Shown piece by piece: positions 106 through 42,144 of a stretch of DNA of 64,000 bases. Under the pieces are notes generated by a model. That model had not been told where the DNA came from, ran no database searches, and was given only the letters and a program-made list of their open reading frames with translations. Each line of letters opens with the position of its first letter. The first letter of the stretch is position 1. A program made the position numbers and the translations under genes. This DNA comes from Trichosphaerium sp. ATCC 40318 (taxonomy: Eukaryota > Protista > Tubulinea), in the NCBI GenBank assembly GCA_038496445.1, contig JALMLS010000062.1:1-64000 (forward strand), in the 5' to 3' direction.

Positions 106-2759
106 TATTGATCCTTCAGCAGGTTCACCTACTGAAACCTTGTTACGACTTCATCATCCTTTATGAGCGCAAGTTCGAGCAGGTTCGATAACCGGCAAGC
201 CGGTCGTCCCCCTGGTCTCACTCGCACCCACATCGGTCGATGCGACGGGCGGTGTGTACAAGCAACAGGGACAGATTCCAGGTGCGTTGATGACACACCT
301 GTACGAGGCATTCCGCGTTCGTGGCTACAGTTACAGCAACCAGTCCCTAAGCACGCATGTGTCTTTTCGGAGAAGCAGCATTGAGCACACTTAACATCCA
401 AATCGACCACACGGTGCGCTTTCATGTATTTTTTTTATGAACATTGCAGAAACTTACTTCATAATAAAGTTTGCCTTGGTAAAGATATATAATCTTCCAA
501 GTCAAAGCATTTAAGTGAAGAAGAAACCTTATTTGTTAATTTGAAACGATCCACAGCTCTTTCAATGTTTACACTAAGGAAACGAGTCCAAAGATGTAAG
601 TTTTCATCTAACAGCGCTTCTCATCTTAACATTAAAGGAATTTAACTTCCTAAAAAGCCTCGACGAGGGGGTTAACTCTTTATATTAGGTTCAGGACAGA
701 CTTTTGTTATGAAGGTGGTAGTTTCCGAAGGTGCGTTTAAGTGTAGTCGTATTTAGATAATAAAATCTGAGGTTTAACTCGCTGTCGTGAAGAAGTGTTC
801 TGGCGGTTTCAGGGCTTGCCCGGATGCCTGTTCGGCCCAGGAACCCGTTGAACTAAGCAGTGTAGGCCGCGTGCGGCCCGGAATATCTGGGGGCATCCCG
901 GATCTGTTATAGCCGCCGCTTCTTACGACTTTTCGCCGTCAGTCCTGCACAGGGGTCCCGCACGAGGCGGGGGAATCAATGTGACAGTAGCGATCTCGCC
1001 CGTTATCGGAATAAACCTGACAGATAAGTCCACGAGCCTAAAACGACCATGCACCACCGTTAGCTAACTCGGAAAAGACCCTTCAGTCTGTTCGTCCCCT
1101 TAGAGCGTCCGATCCCGGTAAGTTGTCGCGCGTTGAGTCAAATTGAGCCGCAGCCTCCAGAGCCTGGTGGTGTTGCTCCGTCAATGCCTTTAAGTTTCAG
1201 CCTTGCGACCATACTTCCCCCCTGGGCCCGATTACTTCGGTTTCCCGTGGGAACGGGCCCCGAGCCTTGGTTTGCCCGGCGCCCATTCAGTCGGCATCGT
1301 TTACTGTGGAGACTACACGGGTCTCTAATCCGCTTCGCTCCCTCCACCATCGTTCTAGATCACCGGCCACGCCCTTGCAGAGCGCCTTCGCTTCGGGTAG
1401 TTTGGATCAGGTCAAAAGATTTCACTCCTCGCTGATACCACACTCTCTACCCCGTACGCACCTAGTAATCGTGTGTTCTTTATTAGTGTGAAGACTAACT
1501 CAAGTTTTTTCTCAAAGTACTTTTGTAATTCACAATGTTTTTATTCCCTTAATGAAGAACATAAGTTTTCACTCTGACTTGCATATCAGGATATTGTTCA
1601 TACTTAGTTAAAAATGAGACTTGAGCGTCGCACTTGGTAAAGTGTTGTTTTTTGTTTTTTTAAAGCCCAATTCCAGGATGCTGGTGGGTGGCATAGCGGC
1701 CGAAGCCTAAACTGACCTTGCGTTTGAGCGAAGCCATTTATGCCTGGTCGGGCGATGAAAAAGAGTCGGGGGGTTTTGTCAAGGAGTAAACTCCTATATA
1801 AACCTTGTCCCTCTCAGCTGTGTCGTTGTTTGGACTGCGAGCGCTTTAACAGCAACAGCAAAAGTATAAGCTTTCGGAGTGGGTGTTACCGCGGGTGCTG
1901 GCACCCAACTTGTCCTCCAATAGTTTCTCAGGGCGACATTCAGTTGCCCCTCATTGCGACGACCGGTTTAAATGCCGGCCTCGTTACACTCAGTCGCTGG
2001 CTCGATTTGCAATCAATGGCCAAGTTACGCGCCTGCTGTTACCCGTAAGTACAGGGGCCGTATCTAATGCCCCTTCTCCGGGAACCGAACCCTAGTTCCC
2101 CGTTACCCGTCACTGCCGCGGTAGGCCGTTACCCTACCGCCTGGCTGATAGGTCGGCCGCCCTTCCGACTCGTGGAGGGGGAGAACTCTCAACTTTATAT
2201 CGATATGATCTTTATGAAAAAGCACATTCAGCGAAGGATCGAGATTGAACAAAGTGTTCATTTTTCTTTCACCTAGTTTCACCTTATGTAACTTTACATT
2301 ATTTTTTAGAAACATGTCTAGTCAGAGAGAACTCCTCATAACTCCATCGCATGCCCCAACGCCGCTCTTCCCGACGGAGTACGGACGCCGCTTCCTAAGG
2401 GGAGGCTGCTTCCCTTGGCGAACCAAGATGGGATCGGGTGATCGTCCGCTCCTGAGCGTTGGATGCGACCGATGGGTCCTTGCAGCAGAGGGGCCCATCG
2501 GCAGCGCTAGGCGCATTACGTATTAGCCGCAGGTTTCCTTTAATCCCGGTTATCCGCGGGGGAGGCCACGAGTTTTGGTTATAGTGCGTTTAGGAAAACA
2601 AGTTCCTGTGTGCAAAATGACGTGACCATTATTAGTCTTGTCGGGTGGGTTACGACCGTTTTAAGGAGCCGTTTGCGGCTCCGAGGATACCTCTTTGCTG
2701 AGCTTGCATGGCTTAATCCTTCGAGAAAGCTTATCACTCCTGGCAGGCTCAACCAGGTA
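106..2759 (-). rRNA. 18S rRNA: Highly divergent 18S (SSU) rRNA with large expansion segments
   Basis: Minus strand starts TACCTGGTTGAGCCTGCCAG...GATTAAGCCATGCA. It contains GTGCCAGCACCCGCGGTAA, AAACTTAAAGGCATTGACGG, GGTGGTGCATGG and TTGTACACACCGCCCGTCG, and ends GTCGTAACAAGGTTTCAGTAGGTGAACCTGCTGAAGGATCA. These are eukaryotic SSU conserved blocks with many substitutions. Confidence 0.97.
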
Positions 2760-32126: not shown

Positions 32127-32926
32127 CTACACTGAGGTTCCATTAAACTTTGTTAAGAAGAAACACTGGTTGTATAGGCTACTAACTTTCCATTCTCCAA
32201 TAAGTTGAATACCATACAGAGTGTCATCACATTGAGGACCGTCTGGGCTGTTAGAGAGATTAGCAATAGTCACTTCTAATTGTATGAGTACCGAAGAGGG
32301 TTAACGGCATCTGTATATACTGGCTTAGTATAGTAGTTTAGTTTAGGGATGTAAAGGCAACAGTTGATTGGATCACCTTAAACAAAGTTAAACTTTTTTT
32401 AGTAAATCTGAAATAACTCGAGTGCTAGCTTACTCTGCTCGATATTTTTCTTTTCTTCCTTTGCTACGCTTACTTTATTATCATTGGAAGATTCTATCGT
32501 CTTTTCAGAAGACGAATAGTCGAATGAACCTACAATAATTAAACTAACATTCCCAAATGAAGCTAATTTTGTTTTGTTTAATTAAAACTAAATTGCATAC
32601 CACAGTATTCGCAATCCACAGTAAACCATTGTTTTCTTAATTGTGCCCATCCAGTAATAGCGGAAGAGCAATAGTAGGCAGTACACGCAACACCCCAGAG
32701 ACCTGTAAGAGATTAATAGGACAAATAACACAAGGGAAGTCGACAGGTTTTTTTTTTTGTGCCAAACACGTGCTCAAACGTTAGTACCTTTTTGAGCGGC
32801 GTTCTCGTATTCGCAGCAGTAGTAGCCATCTAAAAAAACAAATTACCCTCGAGAAATTAGTACTATGAGCTTACTTGCGGTTAAAGCAAAGCAAATCAAA
32901 AACAAAGAAAGCAGCAGATACTTCAT
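32127..32926 (-). CDS. Small secreted Cys-rich protein with two CC-x-Y-initiated modules
   Basis: Signal MKYLLLSLFLICFALTA. Module 1 YYCCEYENAAQKVSGVACTAYYCSSAITGWAQLRKQWFTVDCEYC; charged linker; module 2 INCCLYIPK...PQCDDTLYGIQLIGEWKVSSLYNQC. AATAAA follows the stop. Confidence 0.65.
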
Positions 32927-33572
32927 TTGAGGTAGTTTACAAAAAAACAGTAATAGAGAAGACTATTGACGCGCTTTCGGTAGTCAAGTTCGAAAGTCCA
33001 AGATAGTAGGTACATCTAAATAGAGCGACATAGGTTCGTTCTATTGGAGGTCTATTATACTAAAGTCAGCAAGGTTAAGGCTTTAGAGCTACAACAATTT
33101 GCAAGTGAAGCTTCGGTTAGCAATCCAACTAAGTTAGTACTAAATTAGTCTGAACACGCCACCTAGAAATGTCAAAACAAAATTTTCGAACACGTTTTTC
33201 ATGAATCCTTGCAACCCATGGTTTAAATAAGATAAATGTACGCGTGGCGCTTCTTTATAGACGTCAGGATAGCCGGGTCTTTATTTGTTCCGTGGTATTT
33301 CAATTATTCTGTAACCAACAGAAAATACACAACAATTACCCCTATGCGAAACAGCGTGTACTGTCTTAACTTCCACGTGCATGAGCATTTGCACTTGTGA
33401 GGACAGCCTGAAATTTTGCGAATTATTTTGTTCACTTAGCTGCACGTACGCGATTAGCACAAACCCACCCATTGCAGTGTAAGCATGGCTACTAAAATAA
33501 ACCAGAAAATGTGCACGTGAATCTAAACGGTTTTTTATGCTGTCATAAAAAGTAAACCACCAACTCATAAAC

Positions 33573-33895
33573 ATGCGCTCTGGGTACGTCCCTTACCCTC
33601 TCACTTCTACCTTCGCTCTTGCTAATAGACTTGTAGACTTTTCTGCCTTGTACTTCTCTCTCTCTTCGTTGTAGCCTACTCGCTAACTTGTGACCTGTGC
33701 GGAACTAGAGACTGTTGTAAACCTACAGCATGCTCCATTTACTGCCGCCAGATTGGCAAAGCCGGCGGATCATGCGACTACAGTGATAGAGAAAACCGTT
33801 GCATCTGCTACTGTTACCAAAAAGAGGACCAAAGCGATGTACCAATACGTTTAGAAATTCTTGAAGAAATGTCATCCAAGAAGGCTAACGAATAA
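33573..33895 (+). CDS. CS-alpha-beta (insect-type) defensin-like prepropeptide, 89 aa; exons 33573-33583 and 33637-33895
   Basis: The GT-AG intron 33584-33636 has a GCTAAT branch site. Removing it gives MRSGLFCLVLLSLFVVAYS | LTCDLCGTRDCCKPTACSIYCRQIGKAGGSCDYSDRENRCICYCY | QKEDQSDVPIRLEILEEMSSKKANE*, with CxxxC, GGxC and CxC motifs. Confidence 0.85.
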
Positions 33896-34171
33896 CTGTA
33901 CCCCTTTGTAGCCTTTTTTGGGCCTCTGGAATAAAACCAACGAATCCTATGTTAAGCAGGTAGTTATGCTACGCGTTTAGATTACTTCAGAAAGAGGTAA
34001 ACATGTAAAAAAGGTCACAACGTGACACTATACCCGCAATTTATTTTATTCGCTATCAATGAATTTTAACAAATTTTTCTTTCGTAAATTACGATCGTCT
34101 ACGGCTTTTTTGTCTTTTCACATTACCCACACTACTTCACCACCTTATGTATCACCGATTGCAGTCATTTG

Positions 34172-40091: not shown

Positions 40092-41213
40092 TTATTCGTT
40101 ACCACTTGCCCATGCCTGACTACTACCGATGGAGATTAATCTACTGCGCCCGTATCCAACAGCAAAAACTTGTGTATAGTGGTCTCCTGATCCAATGTGC
40201 CAATTACCAATCAATCCATTACCATTATTTCCACTTACATATGTCCACTGGTTGTTCACTAACTTCATCGTTTGCGAATGACCGTTATGATTAATAACCA
40301 CAACAGAATCAGTAGGTGAAAATGAAGACACGTCAAAGTCTCCAGCAAGGAAGCGATCGCTAGCCTGAATGTACCACGAACCGATAAGACCTCCATGTCC
40401 GCCTTCTGCATAAACAAACTTTTTGGTGTTTCCATCAAATCTCATAGTATGATGCCATCCGTTTGGGTTTAAAGCTAAGAGATCCTCAGCTGGAGCATTA
40501 TAGAAGCTTCCTACAACGTAATGGTCGTTTGAATTGATCACCCACCAGTATATTTGTCCTGTTGTTGTACTTGATAGGATATCCCAGTTATTTGTAATTC
40601 TGTTATATTTCATCACGTGACACCCACTGGATTTAATGAGAGCGACGTATGTTGAAGGATTAGGGTTGATTACTTCGAACATGCCCGAAATAAGCTTATC
40701 TGAAGAAGAAATGTCGCCGTTCGATGCGTATTGTATTTGTGTCCAAGTGAAGCCATCAACATTGAATTGAGGGGTATATTCGAGCTTGAGAGTTGCGTAT
40801 CTACCGTCAGGGTTTGCTGCGAGTAGAGATTTACGTCCTGCACTATCGAAGTATCCTGAGACATATTTGTCGTTCCACTTTGTTGGCCATGAACCGATTG
40901 ACATTCCCCCGCTTTCCGCAGCTCGCCACTCCTTTGTAGCATCGTCGATGTAAGCTAACATCCACTTTTTACCAGGCTTTATAAACAGAGTGAAAGCACC
41001 GTGGTTGGTGGAAGAGAGGTATTCCATTGGAATGAATTTATCTCCTGAACCAACATTCCATGTTATAGTTGTATATGGTCCGTTCGGGTGAAAATACCTT
41101 TGGTATCTCTTTGCCACAATCTGGTTACCACTTGCGTGTGTTTGCCAGTAGCCATAGATACTTGTAGTAGCACATAAGAGAATTAGGAGGGGTATACAGA
41201 CGTGTTGCTTCAT
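40092..41213 (-). CDS. Intronless secreted repeat protein (FG-GAP/VCBS-like beta-propeller, lectin-like)
   Basis: Signal MKQHVCIPLLILLCATTSIYG. About six repeats IG(S/N)W...D(K/H/R)(F/Y)..G.F...LLA.NP.G, including DRFLAGDFD. Single exon of 373 aa. Confidence 0.85.
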   Translation of the reverse strand: MKQHVCIPLLILLCATTSIYGYWQTHASGNQIVAKRYQRYFHPNGPYTTITWNVGSGDKFIPMEYLSSTNHGAFTLFIKPGKKWMLAYIDDATKEWRAAESGGMSIGSWPTKWNDKYVSGYFDSAGRKSLLAANPDGRYATLKLEYTPQFNVDGFTWTQIQYASNGDISSSDKLISGMFEVINPNPSTYVALIKSSGCHVMKYNRITNNWDILSSTTTGQIYWWVINSNDHYVVGSFYNAPAEDLLALNPNGWHHTMRFDGNTKKFVYAEGGHGGLIGSWYIQASDRFLAGDFDVSSFSPTDSVVVINHNGHSQTMKLVNNQWTYVSGNNGNGLIGNWHIGSGDHYTQVFAVGYGRSRLISIGSSQAWASGNE

Positions 41214-42144
41214 TTGTCTTGAGCCTTTTTGTTTACGTTCTTGCTGTTTTTGAACATGTGATTTTTCATTTTTAGCGCACAATCAGTGATTACTTCACGT
41301 GAAAGATGTCTCGAGAAAAAAACGTGTCAATTACTTTTGGGAACCTTGTAGGAGTTTCAGCCCAAAAAGTCGCATCTGTCAAGGTAAATGGGGGAAGACT
41401 TTAGGCAAGTGGAAATTTACATGCTTGTATTTTTGCGAAACACAGTGTTCTTACATTTATCGGGGTTTTTGGAATGCGTTCCACATTGAGTTTTGGGTAC
41501 TCAGTCTACGACTCCAAAAAGTAACTGGGTAAGGATACTTTGGTCTGGAAGGTGGCTGTCTATAATAGACATTCCAGGGGTTGTAGAAATTAGCAAAAAA
41601 TACGTTCACAGATTCAAAGAAAACAGAACGCGGACGTAAAAAGTTAGGATGCTTTAGAGGAAAAGATCTTGCAACTTTTGTCAGAATAGTAAGCGGGTAA
41701 AAAAAATACCCTTTTCTTTCGTGACAACTACAAACCGTCAACACGATGGATGGAAACTTGCAGATATCTGTAAATTCAGCATTTATTTTTGAGTTAAATT
41801 CAAAGACTGTCTAATTTTAGCTAGAGTGAACTATTCAAACATCTTGTGTTGGCCTTAGGATGTACTACCAAAATGCTTTACGCTCTATAGAATAGTTGTT
41901 TGTTCACTTACATTTCTATTCATTCAAATCTACTTTCTTGTCCCCAACATGTAGGAAGACTTTGCTTTTTATTAATTCATGGGATGGGAAAACACCCGCG
42001 AAGAATGAATAGAGGTGTAAGCGTCGTTTGGTGGAAAAACAAGCACCTCATGGAAATCACGTGAAAACGTAAAAAAGAAAAAACACTAGATACTGCATTT
42101 ACAACGTAGTGCAGTTTCTGAAGTTTTTTATTTGGCTACCTAGT

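Follow-up and report, generated by a model that had tools for sequence, protein, structure and literature searches.

CS-alpha-beta defensins are generally regarded as having arisen in plants, fungi, and animals, with rare bacterial cases. Does the marine amoeba Trichosphaerium sp. ATCC 40318 express such a peptide, what might it do, and where might its gene come from? These questions are raised by a short locus in the stretch of 64,000 nucleotides analysed here (the window), where an earlier note, made from the sequence, had described a gene missed by the ORF track, with a 53-nt GT-AG intron and an 89-aa reading frame, and had read its product as a five-disulfide defensin variant. The genome of this organism has a GC content of 37.7% and a mean intron length of 75 nt, was obtained from single-cell libraries, and contains 1581 gene models of giant-virus origin, with introns in about 40% of the putative transfers (PMC10521059). 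The window agrees with this description, having 38% GC and short introns.

Gene structure and expression

The defensin-like gene lies on the plus strand, starts with the ATG at 33573, and ends with the stop codon TAA at 33893-33895. Its product of 89 aa consists of a hydrophobic leader of 19 aa, a core of 45 aa, and a tail of 25 aa. Among the contigs of public runs, a cDNA contig of run X4 skips exactly 53 nt with GT..AG ends, joining 33583 to 33637 as the earlier note had proposed, and all the coordinates of that gene model hold. In the same contig the template-switch adaptor is joined at 33547, which places the 5′ end of the transcript at about this position and gives a 5′ UTR of 33547-33572. 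The coding part of exon 1 (33573-33583) is only 11 nt long and comprises the first three codons of the signal peptide and two further nucleotides. It is followed by a phase 2 intron inside the signal peptide (33584-33636), with a GTACGT donor, a CTAAT branch-like motif, and a TAG acceptor. Exon 2 (33637-33895) encodes the remainder of the predicted 19-aa signal peptide (33637-33682, hydropathy up to 3.3), the mature core with its 10 Cys (33683-33817), which is delimited by the AlphaFold2 model, the structural matches, and the family alignment described below, and the acidic C-terminal tail with the stop codon (33818-33895), whose R-x-E-x-L motif is common to the spacers of relatives. The 3′ UTR (33896-33935) contains AATAAA at 33930-33935, and the X3 and X4 contigs end at 33921-33931. 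A leader of the same type is common to the relatives, where it ends just before an (L/I/W/F)TC start; the cleavage site is probably that indicated by hydropathy and by these leader ends.

Exon 2 is also present in contigs of three other studies (X1-X3), the junction being seen in X4. As the cDNA end at 33547 lies downstream of three alternative upstream ATGs, the ATG at 33573 is the first of the transcript. Five other combinations of ATG, GT, and AG with open frames were considered and rejected: four would have to start at ATGs lying 5′ of the cDNA end, and the reads show none of the five. The gene is thus real, transcribed, and spliced. Contig depth is 2780 in X4, against 118 and 14 for the neighbouring genes, and 412 in X3, against 24 and 4-6; in both runs this is about 20 times the depth of the upstream neighbour and about 100-200 times that of the downstream one. 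Since contig depth ranks genes poorly, high expression is graded as likely.

The strict pattern CxxxC..GxC..CxC occurs once in the six frames of the whole window. The looser pattern of the literature occurs in two places, this gene and a single spurious frame; none of 20 shuffles contains it. A chance motif is ruled out by the shuffles, by the expression, and by the existence of 19 relatives. Within the 64,000 nt of the window no paralogue was found. A low-depth X4 contig at 33333-33552 carries several substitutions and a 7-nt insertion, and 2 nt are missing in X4 at 33901 in the 3′ UTR; these differences represent a second allele or a strain variant.

Both neighbours of the gene are intron-rich host genes that are spliced in the same runs, so the gene occupies an ordinary nuclear locus; a contaminant or an endogenous virus block is ruled out on the same ground. 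The head-to-head neighbour (32926..32130, minus strand) was missed by ORF calling and has six exons, its five introns being seen in X3/X4. Its product of about 165 aa, with a signal peptide, 11 Cys, and two CC motifs, is a second expressed Cys-rich protein that is predicted to be secreted, and an intergenic region of about 510 nt is common to the two genes. The downstream gene (34112 to about 35845, plus strand; cDNA 5′ end at 34112) has at least nine spliced introns. By eye its product resembles the centromere protein CENP-N, and its single exons gave no Pfam match. Elsewhere in the window, an intronless frame of 396 aa (40092-41282, minus strand), unusual in an intron-rich genome, encodes a signal peptide and Trp/Gly-rich repeats; it looks like a bacterial-type beta-propeller or lectin and had no match in Pfam. 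A very divergent SSU rRNA gene of 2.65 kb (106-2759, minus strand) contains, within its 3′ portion, a long AT-rich insertion at about 830-360.

The family of relatives

The family emerged from an exhaustive protein search over 1.84 billion representatives, which yielded 17 true relatives with E values from 2e-23 to 7e-6, whereas word-indexed searches returned only 1 and 3 proteins. Two further distinct relatives from other searches bring the number to 19, that is, about 20 proteins with the amoeba protein. Two of the 19 hits of the exhaustive search were left out: P0019, whose repeats are ordinary defensin-like units with six cysteines, and P0014, a protein of 1294 aa with 12 short stretches. 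No relatives were found among IMG/VR contigs, GTDB genomes, or phages.

Two subtypes can be distinguished: 13 sequences have 10 Cys (one of them with its start missing) and 7 have 8 Cys. The alignment has eight invariant columns, including C17-x3-C21, G29-x-C31, and C40-x-C42, which are present in 20/20 sequences, and the consensus ends in RCICYCY. In a tree of 48 columns the split between the subtypes is supported at 99/99, and it is the only firm one. The family profile matches a scorpion defensin (E 9e-4) and scorpion long toxins (E 0.004). Individual members match Defensin_2 (15/20), Gamma-thionin (16/20), and actinodefensin (11/20) weakly, all below the curated cut-offs. His at the position of plectasin H18 is found in 12/19 members, P0003 and P0021 among them, the amoeba protein having Tyr and being also devoid of the GFGC start.

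Further Cys-rich sequence follows the spacer in 16/19 members, with 6-26 extra Cys. It is absent from the amoeba protein, from the copy of another protist (P0004), and from the nearest relative (P0001). One second module, occupying the C-terminal 70 aa, is common to five proteins (P0002, P0007, P0008, P0009, and P0016), which lie on viral-type and unplaced contigs; it has no match in Pfam or PDB and by eye looks defensin-like.

Predicted fold and disulfide pattern

The core contains Cys at core positions 3, 6, 11, 12, 17, 21, 31, 40, 42, and 44 and is weakly cationic, with a net charge of +1. AlphaFold2, run on the family alignment, gives a model with a pLDDT of 84.7, in which a loop is followed by a helix (15-23) and a hairpin (28-34/39-45), the helix being packed on the two-stranded antiparallel sheet. 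In an exhaustive structure search this model matches eurocin and plectasin NZ2114 best, with Z 4.6 and an rmsd of 1.8-2.1 A across 37-38 residues, and nearly all the top matches are CS-alpha-beta chains of the cis-defensin type. The Z score is modest in absolute terms, as expected for chains of 40 residues, and the evidence lies in the consistency of the match list. Shape matches in the Atlas are clusters of defensins, actinodefensins, and gamma-thionins with TM 0.53-0.65, defensin-type in 9/10 rows. Foldseek gave no match with E below 0.1, and BFVD contained no viral structure matching the model.

Sequence searches with the single protein gave weak matches only, every one a defensin or a scorpion toxin, and the best of them are antifungal plant defensins. 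The earlier note had asked for a profile check with Defensin_2 and Gamma-thionin beside a structure search. The profiles gave only 12.1 bits (E 0.19; gathering cut-off 20.4 bits) and 13.8 bits (E 0.07; cut-off 25.1 bits), respectively, and the structure search came out in favour of CS-alpha-beta. The actinodefensin model NF038042 did not match the amoeba protein, and the best relative reaches 27.7 bits against a cut-off of 65 bits. The predicted fold is therefore that of CS-alpha-beta peptides, closest to eurocin and plectasin, and, as no Pfam or NCBIfam defensin cut-off is reached, the protein falls within the superfamily and in no named family of it.

The 10 Cys, conserved in relatives, fit the five disulfides that had been claimed. 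In the structural alignments residue 1 of the model pairs with residue 2 of eurocin, residue 12 of NsD7, and residue 9 of drosomycin. If ungapped, these starts place C3 on the first Cys of the fold, bonded to C31 as in insect defensins, which leaves C11 to pair with C44; the likeness to the insect ATCDL start noted earlier finds support here. C6 and C12 are always absent together in the 8-Cys subtype, so a C6-C12 bond is predicted. The most likely arrangement, judging from the alignment ranges and covariation, would thus be C3-C31, C17-C40, and C21-C42 in the fold core, with C6-C12 and C11-C44 stapling the N-terminal loop. A plant-type pairing of C11-C31 and C3-C44, suggested by sequence alignments, is disfavoured by the alignment ranges of the model. 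A loop Cys bonded to the last Cys is not among the ten-cysteine reference array patterns in the part of PMC5116183 available to us.

The acidic tail

The tail of 25 aa has a net charge of -3 and is predicted, at low confidence, to be helical. It aligns with the start of the spacer between the domains of multi-domain relatives and so represents an inherited spacer or pro-segment. A [RK]-x-[ED]-x-hydrophobic motif is found in the tail or spacer of 10/19 sequences, against 1.8 expected in shuffles, a figure to be read with the post hoc definition of the motif and the relatedness of the sequences in mind. There is no dibasic site at the boundary between core and tail. It has been reported that the propeptide of the plant defensin NaD1 serves vacuole targeting and protects the producer (PMC3922462), and the amoeba tail may work in a similar way. 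Of the class II-type propeptide originally claimed, the acidic 25-aa tail stands; its homology is to the interdomain spacer, which leaves the plant class as an analogy.

Relatives on giant-virus-type contigs and in protists

Fourteen of the 19 relatives could be placed in a genomic context. About nine lie on giant-virus-type contigs and one in another protist; P0007, P0009, P0010, and P0017 were assigned to neither class. The closest relative, P0001, has about 78% identity in the core and lies on an intronless contig with 22% GC. Its neighbour starts with KYxKYKxKY, and the only named relative of that neighbour is Hokovirus_3_55 (60% identity). P0016 is found on a contig of 294 kb (ERZ25072490) in which AAAATTGA, the mimivirus early-promoter motif, is four times enriched and which contains genes for a translation-factor GTPase, a Rab, and a mitochondrial carrier. 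All the look-alikes of its neighbour are Nucleocytoviricota DUF3339 clusters, and a homologue of this neighbour, 44% identical, lies close to P0011. P0018, P0015, P0021, and L009 occur among F-box-LRR, ankyrin, eRF1-like, and orphan genes on contigs that are gene-dense and apparently intronless, with enrichment of AAAATTGA in most.

P0008 lies on the 80-kb contig L003 (SRR15505516_40422), which has 53% GC and is gene-dense, with histone, ankyrin, and phosphatase genes. L003 is a candidate for an unusual large DNA virus, and P0008 and P0012 are probably both on giant-virus-type contigs. One gene of L003 has tailed-phage protein look-alikes. Viral-type contigs bearing relatives range from 22% to 53% GC and include one of 84 kb (ERZ27297509), and an exact AAAATTGA stands 56-84 nt upstream of four viral-type copies. 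Capsid or polymerase genes were absent from the retrieved flanks of the relatives. The assignment of these contigs to giant viruses, which draws on gene content and motifs, is strong but indirect.

P0004 (L005/L006, 9185-9532) belongs to an AT-rich eukaryote. Like the amoeba copy, it is single-domain and has Tyr at the H18 position. In the neighbouring gene a short GT-AG intron joins a kinase to an AAA-GAF-cyclase, from which we would guess that the organism is possibly a heterolobosean. The gene callers behind the databases miss intron-split genes, so protist copies are undercounted.

The cores of the amoeba protein and P0001 share 36/45 residues, and 25 of those 36 codons differ, which argues for an old relationship under strong purifying selection and not for a recent copy. 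In the tree the amoeba copy falls inside the 10-Cys group, and viral-type rows stand on both sides of the 8/10 split. With 48 columns the tree is too short to root. It is compatible with the two protist copies forming one clade (p 0.31), and its rejection of a single viral clade carries no information, since unplaced rows may be viral. The position of the amoeba copy and the known virus-derived genes of its host fit a viral origin of the gene. Taken together, the relatives and the amoeba protein suggest an unnamed and undescribed family, common to protists and giant viruses and apparently traded between them.

A bolder account, possible but in our judgement doubtful, would make this the first secreted CS-alpha-beta defensin family of giant viruses (Nucleocytoviricota) and amoebae. 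It would have been an early viral antibacterial weapon against bacteria sharing the host cell, reshuffled into multi-domain precursors and passed to protists, and the highly expressed, intron-bearing amoeba copy would descend from a viral defensin that its host has domesticated, with a pattern of five disulfides not recorded before, two of them stapling the N-terminal loop.

Possible functions

The reading to which we incline, as somewhat probable, is that the protein is an antibacterial peptide of the cis-defensin superfamily, made through the secretory pathway and serving in host defence or in the killing of prey. The signal peptide would direct it to the ER, where the five disulfides would form, and the acidic helical tail would serve as a pro-segment that keeps the peptide masked or sorts it and that is later cut off, possibly close to the conserved R-x-E-x-L motif. 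The mature core, barely cationic, would end up in food vacuoles or in the surroundings of the cell. There it would not lyse bacteria by its charge but attack a particular component of their envelope, much as lipid II is the target of plectasin and eurocin. In giant viruses the same module would be present and rearranged, in many cases with additional Cys-rich domains fused to it, and the viral copies would probably suppress bacteria competing inside or around the infected cell. In favour of this antibacterial role are the splice, the 5′ end, the deep contigs in two independent studies, and the nearest structures, which are antibacterial fungal defensins that bind lipid II. Most relatives retain the His on which the affinity of plectasin for lipid II depends (PMC11222147), and Trichosphaerium feeds on bacteria (PMC10521059). 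Against it are the net charge of +1, the Tyr of the amoeba copy in place of this His at H18, its missing GFGC start, and the fact that the fold does not predict function: in this superfamily, whose members include toxins and peptides with other activities, function is fixed neither by the cysteine pattern nor by the fold (PMC5116183).

The same observations can be read in other ways. The targets of the peptide might be eukaryotic (fungi, algae, and protists that are prey or competitors) and be hit at their ion channels or membrane lipids, in the manner of plant defensins, drosomycin, and scorpion-type peptides; the viral copies would then affect other protists or the host cell itself. The antifungal plant defensins that head the matches of the single protein and the profile match to scorpion long toxins both point in this direction, and a tail that protects the producer fits activity on eukaryotic cells (PMC3922462). 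We nevertheless consider such a target unlikely. The structural matches lie on the side of fungal and insect defensins, the KCxN toxin motif is absent, and the long N-terminal loop is tied to non-toxic members (PMC5116183). Lipid-binding plant defensins are strongly basic, unlike this core.

The low charge would suit a signalling or recognition ligand on a defensin scaffold, comparable to plant defensin-like ligands, with a role in cell-cell recognition, aggregation, fusion, or encystment that viruses would mimic in order to manipulate the host. The very strong conservation between the amoeba and viral-type sequences suggests a fixed protein partner, the matches include SLR1-BP and other plant defensin-like clusters, and the life cycle of Trichosphaerium is complex (PMC10521059). 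This we hold to be distinctly improbable, as relatives spread over contigs of 22% to 53% GC and in an unrelated protist are easier to reconcile with a microbial target that is conserved than with the receptor of a single host. The extra Cys of 16/19 members would suggest instead modular binding proteins, and the apparently very high expression could also be that of a disulfide-rich module that kills nothing and is either structural or a binder of glycans or lipids, with a place in adhesion, in the cell coat, or on the virion surface, or possibly a protease inhibitor. The single-domain layout with a short tail in the amoeba and the other protist is, on the contrary, usual for a peptide precursor, and an exact AAAATTGA before four viral-type copies is ill-suited to a late structural protein; of the possibilities considered, we give this one the least credence.

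Comparison with known systems

With the six-cysteine CS-alpha-beta defensins (eurocin 2LT8, plectasin, sapecin, lucifensin, and actifensin) the amoeba protein shares the predicted fold of loop, helix, and hairpin (rmsd about 2 A at Z 4.6), the CxxxC helix, GGxC, CxC, the N-terminal xTC start, and a signal peptide. Most relatives also share the His before the second helix Cys, which is Tyr in the amoeba copy. The amoeba protein differs by two extra cysteine pairs (C6, C11, C12, and C44), by an acidic C-terminal tail and no N-terminal propeptide, and by scores below all family cut-offs. Class II plant defensins (NaD1; PhD1, PDB 1N4N) have the same order of signal, core, and acidic C-terminal segment predicted to be helical, and PhD1 has 10 Cys like the amoeba core. 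PhD1 forms five disulfides with them. The cysteine spacing of the amoeba protein is different, with CC in the loop and a terminal CxCxC, and its core is weakly charged. Its tail, of 25 aa against about 33 aa in the plant propeptides, resembles these in layout and is homologous to the interdomain spacer.

The earlier remark that defensins are scarcely documented in protists agrees with the literature, in which one earlier protist report of CS-alpha-beta peptides was found. LsAMP-1 and LsAMP-2 of the ciliate Laurentiella are six-cysteine heliomicin homologues identified in silico and described by their authors as the first in protists (PMC10040121). Like the amoeba peptide, they are predicted CS-alpha-beta members and not strongly cationic, whereas the amoeba peptide has cDNA support, 10 Cys, and a family of its own. 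Mimicin of mimivirus is the first giant-virus antimicrobial protein to be reported (bioRxiv 10.64898/2026.09.16.751764, September 2026) and sets a precedent for an early-expressed protein of this kind. Unlike the present family, it is Cys-free, disordered, and highly cationic, and it has no signal peptide; the screen that led to it excluded cysteine-containing peptides and so could not have picked up this family. No reports of giant-virus, other viral, or amoebozoan defensins were found in the literature covered, which includes few subscription journals, and the genome paper of Trichosphaerium does not mention defensins (PMC10521059).

Significance

What is new here is an expressed gene with a known fold that defines an undescribed family of protists and giant viruses; the distribution of this family is surprising. 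A transcribed amoeba copy, a second protist copy, and many giant-virus-type copies widen the range of CS-alpha-beta defensins, and transfer by viruses is a possible route to the scattered occurrence of the fold. The two subtypes, with 8 and 10 Cys, amount to a natural experiment on the gain of a disulfide and may offer a new scaffold for antibiotics. The core of 45 residues can be synthesized and is a candidate for how free-living amoebae kill bacteria besides amoebapores and lysozymes, and equally for how giant viruses may exclude bacterial competitors in their hosts.
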